Assembly: GCA_965603825.1 (NCBI GenBank)
Contig: CBFDEM010000028.1
Coordinates: 310,001 to 374,000, forward strand
Source: Blepharisma stoltei ATCC 30299
Lineage: Eukaryota; Protista; Ciliophora
Reading direction: 5' to 3'
DNA: 64,000 nucleotides
The notes under the pieces were generated by a model that searched no databases, had not been told where the DNA came from, and saw only the letters and a list, made by a program, of their open reading frames with translations. Of this stretch, positions 41,056 to 46,406 are shown one piece after another. Each line of letters starts with the position of its first letter. The first letter of the stretch is position 1. The position numbers were made by a program, and so were the translations under genes.

Positions 41056-41874
41056 CTATTTATAATTTCTGATTATCCGGATCTGCTTTTTATTATCTTT
41101 TTTTATAGTATCTTCGTATGAATAAATCCCTAAGCTGTTACGTGTAATTACAGGATCTTTTTGATATTTACTTCTATATCCCAAATTAGTAGGAGACATT
41201 CTTCCATGAAGACTAGTTCCTCGTGCCTCATTTTTTCTTCGTTTTTCTACAAGTTTATCGAGCTTATTTACCAAGCTCAGCCCAATATTTACCTTAGGCG
41301 AGCTTACCATAAATAAAGTATTTTTTTTCTTTTGTTTTCGTTGTGGGATCAAGCCATTTCAGCGAGTGTCCAAAAGCTTAAAGCTTCCATTTGAAGAAGA
41401 TTTTGTTTGACAATTAAAAATTTTCGCCAAGCTTGGGTTTATTGACGGGCTTGGAGTTTTAGATTTTTCAAAATTAAAAGCAGGTCTATTCCTGCAAGGC
41501 GGAGTTTTACATCGGTAAATTAATAAAGCATTTTTTTGGCTTCTAGGAGAATATTTAGTTTGTGTGAATTTTAAAGATTTGTTTTCTTTTAGCTTGATCC
41601 CGTTGAAATGGTGGCTGCTTCCACTAGAAAGACCTTTTTTCTGAAATCTAGGTGTTAATTCGGCGTCATTAATACCATCTGTACATTGGATTGCAATTGT
41701 ATTAAATGACATATAAGAATCGTTGGCTTGAGGAATCTCAGCGGGTATGAAAGCAGATTCAGATAAATTAGAATAAGAATTAAAGTGGGCTTTACTTGAA
41801 GAATAACGCTTGCTGAGACTTATAGGGTCAATATTGTGTGCCTTTGGAAGGTCAATCACACAGTTTTTCTTCAT
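41056..41874 (-). CDS. hypothetical basic protein
   Basis: Two in-frame ORFs joined by TGA(Trp) 41359. Confidence 0.65.
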
Positions 41875-41944
41875 TTTTCCATAAGTGGAAGATTATATAA
41901 TAAAAATTCATGCACTAGACTAACAAATTAATTTATGAAAATTG

Positions 41945-42919
41945 TTAATTTTTACTTTCCATGAGCCTCTGTAAATCTTCATCCCACATGGCTGCTTTAA
42001 CAATTTCACTTATTATTTCATCACAATCTCCGTCAAAAAATACGTCTCTTTTAGATTCTGATTCAAATTTGAATCCATTCTGTATAAACGAATTTAGTCC
42101 TCCTTTATTTATAACAATTCTTGGGGTATCATAACTTACCATTTCTGCAAGTGAAGCAAAAGGAAAAACCGTTAAACCTGTTCCGATAACCAAAAGCAAA
42201 TCAGCAAAGACAATTAACTCTGCCTTAGAGTGGTAGTTAGTTGGCAGATTTTCCCCAAAAAATACGACATCAGGTTTAACGACACCACCGCAATCGCAAA
42301 ATGCTGGCTTTTTTTCGAGCATATGCTCACGTAGCCTTGCTATTGGGTATTCTTTTTTGCATGATGTGCAGTGAGCATTGTTAACGTTTCCATGGGCTTG
42401 AACAAGCTTATTTGTGGAGAGTCCAACTTTAATTTCTAATCCGTCAATATTCTGAGTATAATACATAAATAAGAGTCCTTTCTGTTCAAGTAATTTTATG
42501 AAATAGTGGGTAAGAGTTGGCTTTTTATTAACTGTTACCAGTTTAGGGCCGATTCTGTAAAAAGGTTCTGGGTTAGTCTTGAAAAAGTTTATGTCAAAGA
42601 CTGCTTCAGGGCATGGCAATGGCAAGCCTTCTTCTTGGATTTGGGCATAAAGACCAGTTACAGGGGTCCTAAAGTCTGGTATTCCGGCATTTACAGATAT
42701 CCCAGCACCTGTCATAACTGCAATTCTCTTATAAATTTTCGAGGAAATTTTTGTGCCAATTTCTTTAATATTTCCTTTTTCAAAGTAAATCGCATCATCT
42801 TGTGGATTTTCGATAATTGGCCGACTTGAAGTTTGGGGATCTAACGGACTTCTTTCGGAAAATGCCCTATTGGTTAGTGCTGAATTGCAGCTAAAAAAGG
42901 GCTTGATTCGTGAGAACAT
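41945..42919 (-). CDS. class I sirtuin (SIRT2/SIRT3/Hst2-like NAD-dependent deacylase), probable mitochondrial presequence
   Basis: 'GAGISVNAGIPDFR', 'YTQNIDGLE', 'AHG', CxxC..CDC, 'KPDVVFFGE'. Confidence 0.95.
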   Translation of the reverse strand: MFSRIKPFFSCNSALTNRAFSERSPLDPQTSSRPIIENPQDDAIYFEKGNIKEIGTKISSKIYKRIAVMTGAGISVNAGIPDFRTPVTGLYAQIQEEGLPLPCPEAVFDINFFKTNPEPFYRIGPKLVTVNKKPTLTHYFIKLLEQKGLLFMYYTQNIDGLEIKVGLSTNKLVQAHGNVNNAHCTSCKKEYPIARLREHMLEKKPAFCDCGGVVKPDVVFFGENLPTNYHSKAELIVFADLLLVIGTGLTVFPFASLAEMVSYDTPRIVINKGGLNSFIQNGFKFESESKRDVFFDGDCDEIISEIVKAAMWDEDLQRLMESKN

Positions 42920-43481
42920 ATTATAAGCTTAATTAAAAATTGCCTTAAAACAAAATTATCCATACATAAGTGGGAAGATTTATTTATTAGAAGTAACGGA
43001 TATAATAATTTTCAGCTATTTATTGCTAGAAAAATGTCTAATTCTTTATCTACTAAAATAGATATTTACATAGAAATGTTTCAATTATTAAGCAAATATT
43101 ATTTAATTAGACAATTTATACTCATTTTATAATATAAAGATTCGGATATAGAAAATCTTAATATTTTAATTTCATAATTTTTTAAAGTTTTAATAGCTAG
43201 ATTTAGTTTAAATTTAAAGAATTTAATTTGCACGTTGTTATCCAATATTTAAAACTTACTTAATATTATGTTTAAAATAATAAAACAGCAGTGAAATAGT
43301 AACTTAAGCTCTGTCTTGATAACTTTATTAATATTTCAGACTTGCTTAAAAGCATATTGGGCAAGATATATATTTTAATATTTATTATTTTTAATAATTT
43401 TATAGTAAATCTATATGCAAAGCTATTATTAGATGCTTTGCTAATGCATTATATTTTTAGAAGCAATTAAGCTTGGTTATT

Positions 43482-43985
43482 TTAAAGTTTACTTGTCATC
43501 ACTGGCTTATTTTTTAAAACATTCCAAGCAATCGGCCCTATTTTAGTTCCTGCCGTTTCATTGGGATTTATTGGAGTATATGAAACTTGGACGCTTCCAA
43601 AAGCAAAGCTCACGCTTTCTCCAGGGCGGTCTGAAGTTCCGCCTGCACCTGACCATTGAATACCTGCAACAATCACTTGCTTGAACTCATAAACAACAAT
43701 AGGGATTTTATTTCCACTCTGAGTGCATACTTCGACCTTCATACTCTTTAATTCTTTTCCCTGAGTGCATGCACCAAAAAGGTTAACACTAGCTACATCG
43801 GTTTCTTTAGTTACCATAAAATTCGACAATGTTGGCTGGCCTGAGATAGGACTATCACCAGAGCCAACACTTGCAGGATTGCTAGCTCCAAAGCTAAAAG
43901 ATGATAGTTTTATCCAATCTCTATGATTATCATCAGTACTTTCACCTTTAATAGTATCAAGTAAAAGGAAAATATCAAAAGCCAT
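43482..43985 (-). CDS. hcp: Hcp1-family (type VI secretion tube protein) homolog with C-terminal PTS1 (SKL)
   Basis: 167 aa from ATG 43985: MAFDIFLLLDTIKGESTDDNHRDWIKLSSFSFG...TKETDVASVNLFGACTQGKEL...ESVSFAFGSVQVSY...WNVLKNK-PVMTSKL*; co-linear with bacterial Hcp1. Confidence 0.92.
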   Translation of the reverse strand: MAFDIFLLLDTIKGESTDDNHRDWIKLSSFSFGASNPASVGSGDSPISGQPTLSNFMVTKETDVASVNLFGACTQGKELKSMKVEVCTQSGNKIPIVVYEFKQVIVAGIQWSGAGGTSDRPGESVSFAFGSVQVSYTPINPNETAGTKIGPIAWNVLKNKPVMTSKL

Positions 43986-44019
43986 ATTAAATTTACTAGC
44001 CAACTTGTTAATCAATAAT

Positions 44020-45468
44020 TTATCTAATTATAGCTTCATCTTTCCAGGTTTGCAAAAAATCGTGCTTCATCACAGCAAAAATATCTGGACGGACGATTGG
44101 GTCTGGCTCAGTCAGCATTAAAATGATTTTTGAAATATTTCGATTTTCTGACTCAAATCTCTCAGGCAGAATATGATGGGCATTAAGCTGATTAAAGTAA
44201 AATTCCTTTTCTAATGGTGACCCTTCAAAAAACAGTTCAAATAATATAAGTCCCAATGCATAAATATCCATCTTTTGGCTACATTCTTGAGTAAGCAGCT
44301 CAGGAGCTCGGTAATGAATGCTAATTACATCAATTGACCTATTTCTTGGCAAGACGCCGTTTTTATGCTTTGAGCTATCTCCTTGCTCGCTTTCAGGCTT
44401 CGCTATTATTGCAAGACCAAAATCAGCGATTTTCACGCTCAAATTTTTGCTGTCTTTATTAAGAAAAATATTGGTGGGCCTGTATAAAGTTTACTTTAAA
44501 TCCCTATGGATGAAGTTATTACTGTGAATACATTGTACACCTTTAAGCAATTGCTTAAAAATTCTGAAGTTTATCGAGCTATCGATTTTTCTCTTTGAAT
44601 TTTGAAGCCAGTCTTGAAGAGAAATTCCGATACTAAGCTCTGTTTGTATGACTAAATAAAATGTAAAATATGGTTCTTCTGGGACATTTAAGTCACAAAA
44701 TTTGTGGGAATGCTCCTGCTTGGCCGGGTTTAAATGTGGATGGTCTAGCTCAATTCAAGAAGAATAATAGCGTAAAAGGAATTTCGATAGAAGTTTAGAC
44801 ATGCTAAAAACCTCTCGAAACATTTTTTGTTCACGAATGTTCTCTTTGATACCGACATGAAGTTTTATCACTTTTATTGCATAAAATTGGCCATCTAGTA
44901 AATGTTTGGCTTTAAATACTACGCTATTTCTGCCTTTGCCGATTTTATTGATAATTTCGAAATTTTGGTTGCATTTTCCATTTTCAAAATATTTATAAAA
45001 TTTTTCAATGCTATCTCCAATTGATTTTTCGTCGATCTTATCTTGATACATTTTAGGGCACTTAAGTGTAATTTTGATATTATTAAATGAATCTTTTACT
45101 TCTGGAATTTTAATTTGAATATCTTCTTTTTCTTTGTCTTTTAAAGTTTTTATTTTACAGCTCAAATACTCGTCAAATATACATGACTGACATTTTTTCA
45201 GTTCTTTGCTATTCCAGTCTTCACTTTCATCTTGTGAGAATATATTTTCACTTGATTGAGAAGAAGTTATTGTTCTAGCTTCGTCTTCTGATATGATTAA
45301 TTTAGGTTTTTTTCGTTTACTAGACTTTCCCATAAGGTAGCCAATCCCAACAAAAAGCAATAAAATCATCAGCATTTCAACTCCGCTTATCAATTGTAAT
45401 TTACAGGTCAATAAAGAATAAAGACTTGAATGGCATGAGCTGGCTTCTAAATCCCATTTGTCTTCCAT
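44020..45468 (-). CDS. membrane-anchored eIF2-alpha kinase-like protein (PERK/HRI/GCN2 family)
   Basis: N-terminal TM helix; 'AKHLLDGQFYAIK', 'RYYSS-W(TGA 44755)-IE', 'LVIQTEL', HRDLKPTNIF after splicing 44480-44494, 'KIADFGLA', 'DIYALGLILFEL'. Confidence 0.88.
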
Positions 45469-45620
45469 TTTATTATCATCACAACGTTACGTTGTTGATC
45501 AGATTTCTTCGCTGAACCAGCCATAATTTTTTATTTATCCAAATCATCTAATAAAAATATTATAAAGCACTTCATTTCAAGACTCCGGCTTTTAAGTTAT
45601 TTAAATTAGCCAATATTAAA

Positions 45621-46406
45621 ATGGAAGAGAAAAAACAAGTGGAGTATTTTGACTTCACACAAGAAATGCAAGAAGAAGCCGAAAAGATCATAGAAGAAGA
45701 CAATGGATCGCTCTCGAATTTCATATACACAAAATTTGATAATCAAGCCAATAAGATGTGAGATGTGTTTTACAAGAACAATACAGCTAATTTTTTTAAG
45801 GATAGGCACTATCTTTTAAATGAGTTCCCTGAGCTGAATGGAGAAATCTTACTATTAGAAGTTGGATGTGGGGTAGGAAATGCTATTTATCCATTATTAG
45901 AAGATAATCAAGCTTTGAGAGCTCAGGTATGCGATTTCTCAAGAGAAGCAATAAACTTATTGAGGCAAAATCCTTCATTTAACAGTGAAAGACTCCAAGC
46001 AGACGTTTGTGACATCACAAAGCAACCAGTCCCATTTACTGAGCCTTCAGATGCTCTACTAATTTTATTCGTTCTCAGTGCAATATCTCCCGAGAAACAT
46101 AGGCTAGCTATTGCAAATGCTACTTCAAACCTCAAACCTGGCGGCTTAGTCATGTTTCGAGACTATGGAAGATATGATTTAGCCCAGCTTAGGCTTGCAG
46201 GTAAAAGAAACAAAAAACTAAAAGAAAATTTTTATTTAAAGCAAGACGGGACGAGATGCTATTATTTTACCACCCAAGAAATTGAAACTTTATTTGAAGG
46301 CTTCAGAGTGTTAGAAAACGAATACCATTACAGAGTCGTAAAAAATCGCAAAGAGGATATCAAAATGAATAGGGTTTGGATTCAGGCTAAATTAATTAAA
46401 CTATAA
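45621..46406 (+). CDS. METTL6: tRNA m3C methyltransferase (METTL2/6, Trm140-like)
   Basis: 'ANKM-W(TGA 45759)-DVFYK..FFKDRHYL', 'LEVGCGVGN', 'FRDYGRYDLAQLR', 'MNRVWIQ'. Confidence 0.93.

Follow-up and report, generated by a model that had tools for sequence, protein, structure and literature searches.

How does the tube protein of a bacterial type VI secretion system (T6SS) come to be encoded in the nuclear genome of a ciliate, and what might it do there? The question is raised by a gene for Hcp in a stretch of 64,000 nucleotides of Blepharisma stoltei ATCC 30299 (assembly GCA_965603825.1, contig 28, CBFDEM010000028.1, positions 310001-374000; this whole stretch is called the window below), which is part of a contig of 893,749 bp in a genome of 41.46 Mb in 64 contigs with 33% GC. 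With respect to the first half of the question, we conclude that a bacterial hcp gene was very probably captured from a T6SS locus and domesticated by the ciliate. With respect to the second half, the explanation that we consider best as a whole, namely a domesticated Hcp that is peroxisomal through a C-terminal Ser-Lys-Leu (SKL) and has taken on a new structural or carrier role, is in our view evenly poised between right and wrong.

The intronless open reading frame (ORF) of 167 residues that a first-pass annotation, made from the sequence alone, had described as an Hcp gene is present at its position, with every motif listed for it and with its final codons (Table 1). Its identity as Hcp is confirmed by both profile and structure comparison. 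The protein matches the Pfam family PF05638 (T6SS_HCP) over the full profile (positions 1-129 of 129, E = 1e-30, 107.1 bits with a cut-off of 23.5), and its best sequence match in the PDB is EvpC, the Hcp of Edwardsiella (3eaa; E = 4.5e-39, residues 1-160). The AlphaFold2 model, for which 74 homologues served as input, has a mean predicted local distance difference test (pLDDT) of 93.1 and a predicted template modeling score (pTM) of 0.85, with the sole drop in confidence in the last 7 residues (pLDDT ~75). Foldseek aligns this model to EvpC 3eaa with a template modeling (TM) score of 0.92 and a root-mean-square deviation of 1.4 Å, and to Hcp1 1y12 with a TM score of 0.90. In addition, the ESM Atlas contains an identical sequence, the model of which has a TM score of 0.90 to a bacterial Hcp cluster. 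The predicted structure shows that the Hcp beta-barrel fold is retained complete in the ciliate protein, and all invariant or near-invariant columns of the Hcp family alignment are retained as well; judging from the sequence, we infer that the protein would still assemble into hexameric rings of the Hcp type. Hcp is a single-copy gene, with no second copy found in a six-frame search of the whole genome.

The relatives of the ciliate protein are bacterial. An exhaustive phmmer search over 1.84 billion representatives yielded 6854 relatives. With three word-index searches added, those more than 50% identical to the ciliate Hcp are only P0002 (73%), P0003 (59%) and P0155 (56%), all of them on bacterial contigs; neither further members of this clade nor other eukaryotic copies were found above 50% identity in these searches. 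Both the P0002 and the P0155 loci contain tssB, tssC, tssE, tssF, tssG and clpV, with vgrG, PAAR and tssA also present at the P0155 locus, and P0003 adjoins tssB and tssC. In a careful IQ-TREE phylogeny of 46 proteins, the ciliate Hcp pairs with P0002 (support 100/98), and this pair joins the pair of P0003 and P0155 (100/100) in a tree of which all the rest is bacterial; the same placement is obtained in a quick tree of 108 rows. The ciliate Hcp is thus a member of a four-member clade of which the other three members are in complete bacterial T6SS loci, and this position, together with the host codons, the transcription and the orphan status described below, upholds the earlier proposal of a horizontally acquired and domesticated Hcp.

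Outside this clade, identity drops to at best 46% in JGI metagenomes, 40% on plasmids and, in the GTDB species genomes, 45% for a partial match or 44% near full length (Gemmatimonadota, Acidobacteriota and Planctomycetota), and a search of viral contigs gave no Hcp relatives. The nearest clusters in the ESM Atlas are all Bacteria; few of their members have a record, and Pseudomonadota is the most frequent phylum in those. The distribution of Hcp relatives gives the direction of transfer as from bacterium to ciliate. Compared with named Planctomycetota, Acidobacteriota, Gemmatimonadota and Pseudomonadota, TssC and the other genes at the P0002 locus reach an identity of just 52-68%, which points to no particular donor lineage.

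The codons of the gene are those of its host. GC content at third codon positions (GC3) is 0.263 in the Hcp ORF, compared with 0.27-0.33 in seven nearby host ORFs, 0.40-0.46 in the genes for P0002, P0003 and P0155 (0.40 in the closest bacterial hcp) and 0.48 in the tssC next to the latter. A per-codon log-ratio of host versus donor usage likewise gives 0.163 for Hcp and 0.157 for the SIR2-family gene downstream of it, as opposed to -0.063 for the bacterial gene. These values show that Hcp codon usage is fully host-like, in agreement with the A/T-ending codons remarked on in the first-pass annotation.

The gene is also transcribed. We compared positions 41800-45700 with the RNA contigs of runs X1 and X2, two of four runs from one study that contain the stretch. 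That these contigs are derived from RNA follows from three features: they are missing precisely the 15-nt intron of the kinase gene upstream of Hcp, none of them lies over the intergenic DNA at 42979-43371, and the depths of adjacent genes are very unequal. A discrete contig in X1 covers the Hcp gene alone, and the gene is clearly expressed. In X1 the Hcp contig has a word depth of 227, compared with 181 at SIR2 and 13.5 in the contig of the kinase, with contig depth being a poor measure. One X2 contig runs from inside the Hcp ORF (43537) over the spacer into spliced kinase mRNA, which shows that Hcp and the kinase are joined in RNA as they are in DNA; a single functional transcript does not follow from this.

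A variant of the gene is seen in organism B of a second study, where the low-depth runs X5 and X6 have a contig of 151 nt over 43482-43629. This contig matches the window without difference in its final 65 nt, SKL-TAA included, and in 46 nt at its opposite end; in between is a segment of 37 nt (43547-43583, minus strand, Hcp residues ~135-147) with 12 substitutions and 4 small in-frame indels. The loop translates as TYYQVGADGKIGRPK in organism B versus SYTPINPNETAGTK in the window, with the organism B version being nearer to P0002. This mosaic pattern could stem from hypervariability of the loop, from gene conversion, or from the presence of a second allele or of a paralogue.

No T6SS accompanies the gene. 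Sheath, baseplate and spike genes are missing from the window, as the first-pass annotation had noted, and the same holds for the genome at large: a six-frame search of the 41.5-Mb genome for TssB, TssC, TssF, VgrG and PAAR (PF05943, PF05591, PF05954, PF05488, PF05947) found none, with an Escherichia coli control that was positive every time. Relics of neighboring T6SS genes were not found either, since tblastn of the window with the proteins of the P0002 locus (L002) hit the Hcp ORF only. Because the genome is without the other T6SS parts, the ciliate Hcp cannot serve as a secretion tube.

What the protein does instead may be indicated by its end. The final codons, ATG ACA AGT AAA CTT TAA, are as the first-pass annotation gave them, whereas the C-terminal extension that it described, PVMTSKL, has to be shortened: only SKL, exactly three residues, goes past the end of the nearest homologue, P0002. 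SKL is missing from P0002, P0003 and P0155. It fits the consensus of the type 1 peroxisomal targeting signal (PTS1), (S/A/C)-(K/R/H)-(L/M), and ciliates have Pex5 and PTS1 import (PMC5755239). Based on amino acid composition, the chance per C-terminus is ~5e-4 for SKL, ~1e-3 for [SAP]KL and ~6.5e-3 for a broad PTS1 pattern, and in a comparison of 196 ORFs of the own genome, Hcp is the sole window ORF with a PTS1-like end. The genome contains genes for peroxisome biogenesis (three Pex14 genes, recognized by Pex14_N, and 13 PEX11 genes), and its peroxisomal enzymes carry comparable endings, with two of three catalases ending in SKL and AKL, all three SCP2 genes in PKL, and three of the 12 acyl-CoA oxidase genes examined in PKL or PKI. 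To take the SKL of Hcp for a canonical PTS1, as was done at first pass, is therefore a reasonable reading, given that the ciliate has tripeptides of this class at the ends of its own catalase and SCP2 genes and of some of its acyl-CoA oxidase genes. The SKL tail is probably flexible and may be exposed, being in the least confident part of the AlphaFold2 model. Going by these sequence features, we give import of the ciliate Hcp into peroxisomes via PTS1 an even chance. As a separate observation, the peroxisomal families of this genome are large, with at least 22 acyl-CoA oxidase C-terminal domains in addition to the 13 PEX11 genes.

The course of events that we propose begins with the very probable capture, by a heterotrich ciliate, of a bacterial hcp (tssD) from a T6SS locus. 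The captured gene has been retained as a stand-alone, well-transcribed nuclear gene, the product of which keeps the Hcp fold and may still make hexameric rings. The derived Ser-Lys-Leu would then be read by the PTS1 receptor, bringing the ring or its subunits into the peroxisome matrix, where the protein might serve in a new way, be it as scaffold, as core or as a carrier that binds cargo in its lumen. In a more specific form of this proposal, which we advance tentatively and somewhat below even probability, Pex5 would bring in the Hcp-SKL rings, whether as hexamers that are already folded or in the form of subunits, and inside the peroxisome they would make up a self-assembling core or carry, piggy-back, lumen cargo that has no signal of its own. 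Any single specific role within the peroxisome has a probability well short of one half, and a Woronin-like core, a cargo carrier and a defensive organelle, the roles that come to mind, are speculation.

Several observations weigh against the proposal. The ciliate Hcp scores 42.9 bits with NCBIfam TIGR03344 (the VI_effect_Hcp1 subfamily), below the cut-off of 58.9, and is a member of the wider Hcp family outside that subfamily model. Its branch is ~3-4 times longer than the bacterial sister branch in both trees. The peroxisomal markers checked mostly end in PKL, with just one in SKL, and a Pex5 gene was not identified in the genome, in which no search aimed at Pex5 was made. A hexamer of the ACGTCA/CGTCAT/TGACAT type, found in 6 of 22 extracted upstream regions of peroxisomal genes, does not occur in the 200 nt upstream of Hcp. 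Finally, SKL could be a chance ending.

The prevalence of PKL among the markers and the missing upstream motif, itself a putative peroxisomal one, speak at the same time for the strongest alternative, in which the same domesticated and expressed Hcp has an SKL that is fortuitous or hidden and acts in the cytosol or another compartment. As a ring, it could, for example, bind small proteins, whether T6SS effectors delivered by bacteria that the ciliate encounters or feeds on, or cargo of the host itself. Hcp rings are established chaperones of small effectors, and the evidence for transfer and expression fits a non-peroxisomal Hcp equally well. Such a protein would, however, have the exact SKL by a chance of only ~5e-4, as a derived extension placed on a tail of lower model confidence, and in a genome of which one catalase has the same ending. 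We regard this alternative as a serious one, of less than even probability. Organism B contributes little information on selection for SKL, since its 3' end, SKL-TAA included, is DNA-identical to that of the window.

The hexamer is also of note for the peroxisomal genes themselves. ACGTCA/CGTCAT or TGACAT is found 13-45 nt before the first in-frame ATG at L088 and L089 (PEX11), L108 (SCP2), L114 and L115 (catalases) and L102 (acyl-CoA oxidase), and the PEX11 paralogues L088 and L089 have an identical upstream block of 20 nt, TATCTACGTCATTAATAAAA. The hexamer could be a promoter element common to peroxisomal genes.

It can also be asked how the slot for the three residues of SKL arose. The P0002 gene ends in ATG AAT TGA TCC CCG TAA, in which the second stop, TAA, aligns with the ciliate TAA, and UGA is read as Trp in B. 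stoltei (PMC9942806). A donor TGA stop could thus have been read as Trp, with translation running on to a TAA three codons later and the tail mutating to SKL afterwards. Yet the three codons have almost no bases in common and are aligned by position alone; moreover, P0003 ends in TAA, and a TAA or TAG three codons further on is an unremarkable coincidence. We consider this origin of the slot unlikely.

Less probable still is that the gene is a neutral passenger, transferred, transcribed by chance, functionless and drifting. Between the ciliate Hcp and P0002, nonsynonymous divergence (dN) is 0.19, and synonymous sites are saturated, so that neither a synonymous divergence (dS) nor a dN/dS ratio can be given. 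A dN this low with saturated dS, together with the invariant residues kept, the frame intact in an AT-rich genome and the codons remodeled, speaks for a gene that has been in the ciliate, under purifying selection, for a long time. When P0003 is taken as the outgroup, 16 amino acid changes are specific to the ciliate and 5 to its sister. This excess and the long ciliate branch are what a drifting gene would show, as is the sharp 37-nt difference between the window and organism B, and Hcp is single-copy and seen so far only in this genome and one variant sample. The long branch also fits changed or relaxed constraint once the T6SS context was lost. A frame of 167 codons that is intact at 33% GC, a codon shift to the host that is complete and that is a slow process, the low dN at saturated synonymous sites, the retained invariant Hcp residues and the confident model are, however, not what is expected of a functionless gene, and the depth of the Hcp RNA contig, poor measure that it is, is at least that of its neighbors. 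We therefore hold a passenger gene to be improbable and a domesticated Hcp kept under selection to be the better account.

The surroundings of the gene are those of a ciliate chromosome. Hcp is located mid-contig, at 353 kb of 894 kb, and lies, as stated in the first-pass annotation, 34 nt downstream of a kinase gene that contains an intron and uses TGA as a sense codon; spacer, intron and TGA are all confirmed (Table 1). Removal of the 15-nt intron restores the catalytic-loop motif HRDLKPTN of the kinase. The published B. stoltei somatic genome has 41 Mbp, UGA as Trp and introns of 15-16 bp (PMC9942806), and the TGA sense codons and 15-nt introns observed here agree with it. DNA similarity to the P0002 gene (71% over 472 nt) sets in at the Hcp start codon, fades ~10 codons short of the stop and is missing from the flanks. 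Downstream of Hcp, the spacer between its stop and the start of the SIR2 gene (42929-43481, ~550 nt) is very AT-rich and untranscribed, and is long for a compact genome compared with the 34 nt upstream.

Table 1. Coordinates of the Hcp gene, its transcript and the adjacent features, numbered from the first nucleotide of the window.
Feature	Position	Strand	Details	Basis
Hcp coding sequence	43485..43985	minus	167 codons, intronless, without in-frame TGA; ATG at 43985	Translation, Pfam, PDB, AlphaFold2/Foldseek
Hcp stop codon	43482..43484	minus	TAA	Read from sequence
Last 3 Hcp codons, candidate PTS1	43485..43493	minus	AGT AAA CTT, Ser-Lys-Leu	Alignments; lower model confidence
Discrete RNA-derived contig	43454..43992	minus	539 nt; Hcp ORF with ~7 nt 5' and ~28 nt 3'; 0 differences	Run X1
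Kinase stop-Hcp ATG spacer	43986..44019	minus	34 nt	Bridged by one X2 RNA contig; no X1 contig at 43993-44006
Kinase gene	44020..45486	minus	Upstream of Hcp; open frame to ~45486	Pfam Pkinase in 3 pieces, each searched separately
Kinase stop codon	44020-44022	minus		Read from sequence
Kinase intron	44480-44494	minus	15 nt, GTAAACTTTATACAG	Missing from RNA-derived contigs
Kinase in-frame TGA	44755-44757	minus	Trp	Read from sequence
SIR2-family gene	41948..42928	minus	Downstream of Hcp	Pfam SIR2, E = 2e-53

Although Hcp is otherwise known only from bacteria, and the nearest database and Atlas clusters are all bacterial, bacterial contamination or a chimeric assembly is rejected as extremely improbable, given the mid-contig site with ciliate genes 34 nt and ~550 nt away on its two sides, the bacterial DNA similarity confined to the ORF, the host-like codon usage, and the mismatch-free RNA contigs that run from Hcp into ciliate-specific flanks and, in X2, into spliced kinase mRNA.

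Two observations concern the bacterial relatives in their own right. At the P0002 locus (L002:3501-4013), a second hcp follows tssC, in the position that P0003 and P0155 have at theirs, with an in-frame stop in the assembly. Furthermore, many of the top-scoring relatives among P0006-P0040 are bacterial proteins of ~1000-2164 residues with six complete Hcp domains per chain. Pfam finds six Hcp stretches each in P0006 (L111:480-6974), P0007 and P0009, and the repeat is ~175 residues long in P0007-P0009. In the AlphaFold2 model of P0007 (pTM 0.68), linkers of ~25 residues are disordered, and the domains have pLDDT 80-90 each. P0008 and P0009 begin with a motif of the LEPR/LELRRVL type, and the gene neighbors of the multi-Hcp proteins include SecA and a PATR-repeat protein. 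From sequence and model, each six-domain protein resembles a pseudo-hexameric Hcp ring made of a single chain and encoded away from T6SS loci. A brief literature search found no paper on chains with six Hcp domains.

Eukaryotes are known to have acquired T6SS effector enzymes. For the tube protein itself kept by a eukaryote we found no earlier report, and full-text literature searches brought up no comparable Hcp in eukaryotes; where a paper on gene transfer into ciliates mentions "hcp", hybrid cluster protein is meant and not T6SS Hcp. Hcp has no enzymatic activity and forms a stable hexameric ring, stackable into tubes, with a lumen of ~4 nm that binds small proteins. Its retention, expression and apparent retargeting in a ciliate make for a natural experiment in the reuse of a self-assembling nanostructure. 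If peroxisomal import holds true, a bacterial protein would have been given an organelle address by a tail of three residues, perhaps opened by the UGA reassignment of the host, and if Hcp-SKL rings are present in the peroxisome, they would amount to a novel type of organelle component, made from part of a bacterial weapon.

Among known systems, the nearest in likeness of history is reportedly that of the amidase effectors (Dae) domesticated by ticks and by further eukaryotes, said to have been described by Chou et al. in Nature in 2015. In that case too, a T6SS-associated bacterial gene has been kept by eukaryotes, but Dae proteins are effector enzymes and secreted antibacterials, whereas the ciliate Hcp is a structural tube subunit without enzymatic activity and has a signal of peroxisomal type. 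The parallel in function is HEX-1 of the fungal Woronin bodies, which bears a PTS1 and self-assembles in a peroxisome-derived organelle; the resemblance would be one of function alone, with fold and origin unrelated. In bacteria, orphan Hcps supply a T6SS that is encoded elsewhere. Orphan islands with hcp likewise stand apart from the main T6SS cluster, whereas the ciliate genome has no T6SS at all; one report counts 929 bacterial orphan islands with hcp, vgrG and/or PAAR and describes those on plasmids as often occurring without a full T6SS cluster (PMC13098142).

The closest comparison is with Hcp proteins that still belong to a secretion system. The T6SS tube proteins EvpC (3eaa) and Hcp1 of Pseudomonas aeruginosa (1y12) are like the ciliate Hcp in length, in the MAFD... 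N-terminus and in the beta-barrel fold, and EvpC is 42% identical to it. P0002, P0003 and P0155 are the closest relatives, but are in T6SS loci, have GC3 values in the bacterial range given above and are without SKL. Unlike EvpC and Hcp1, the ciliate Hcp is encoded in a eukaryotic nucleus, in host codons and with an SKL extension, in a genome without sheath, baseplate, spike or PAAR.

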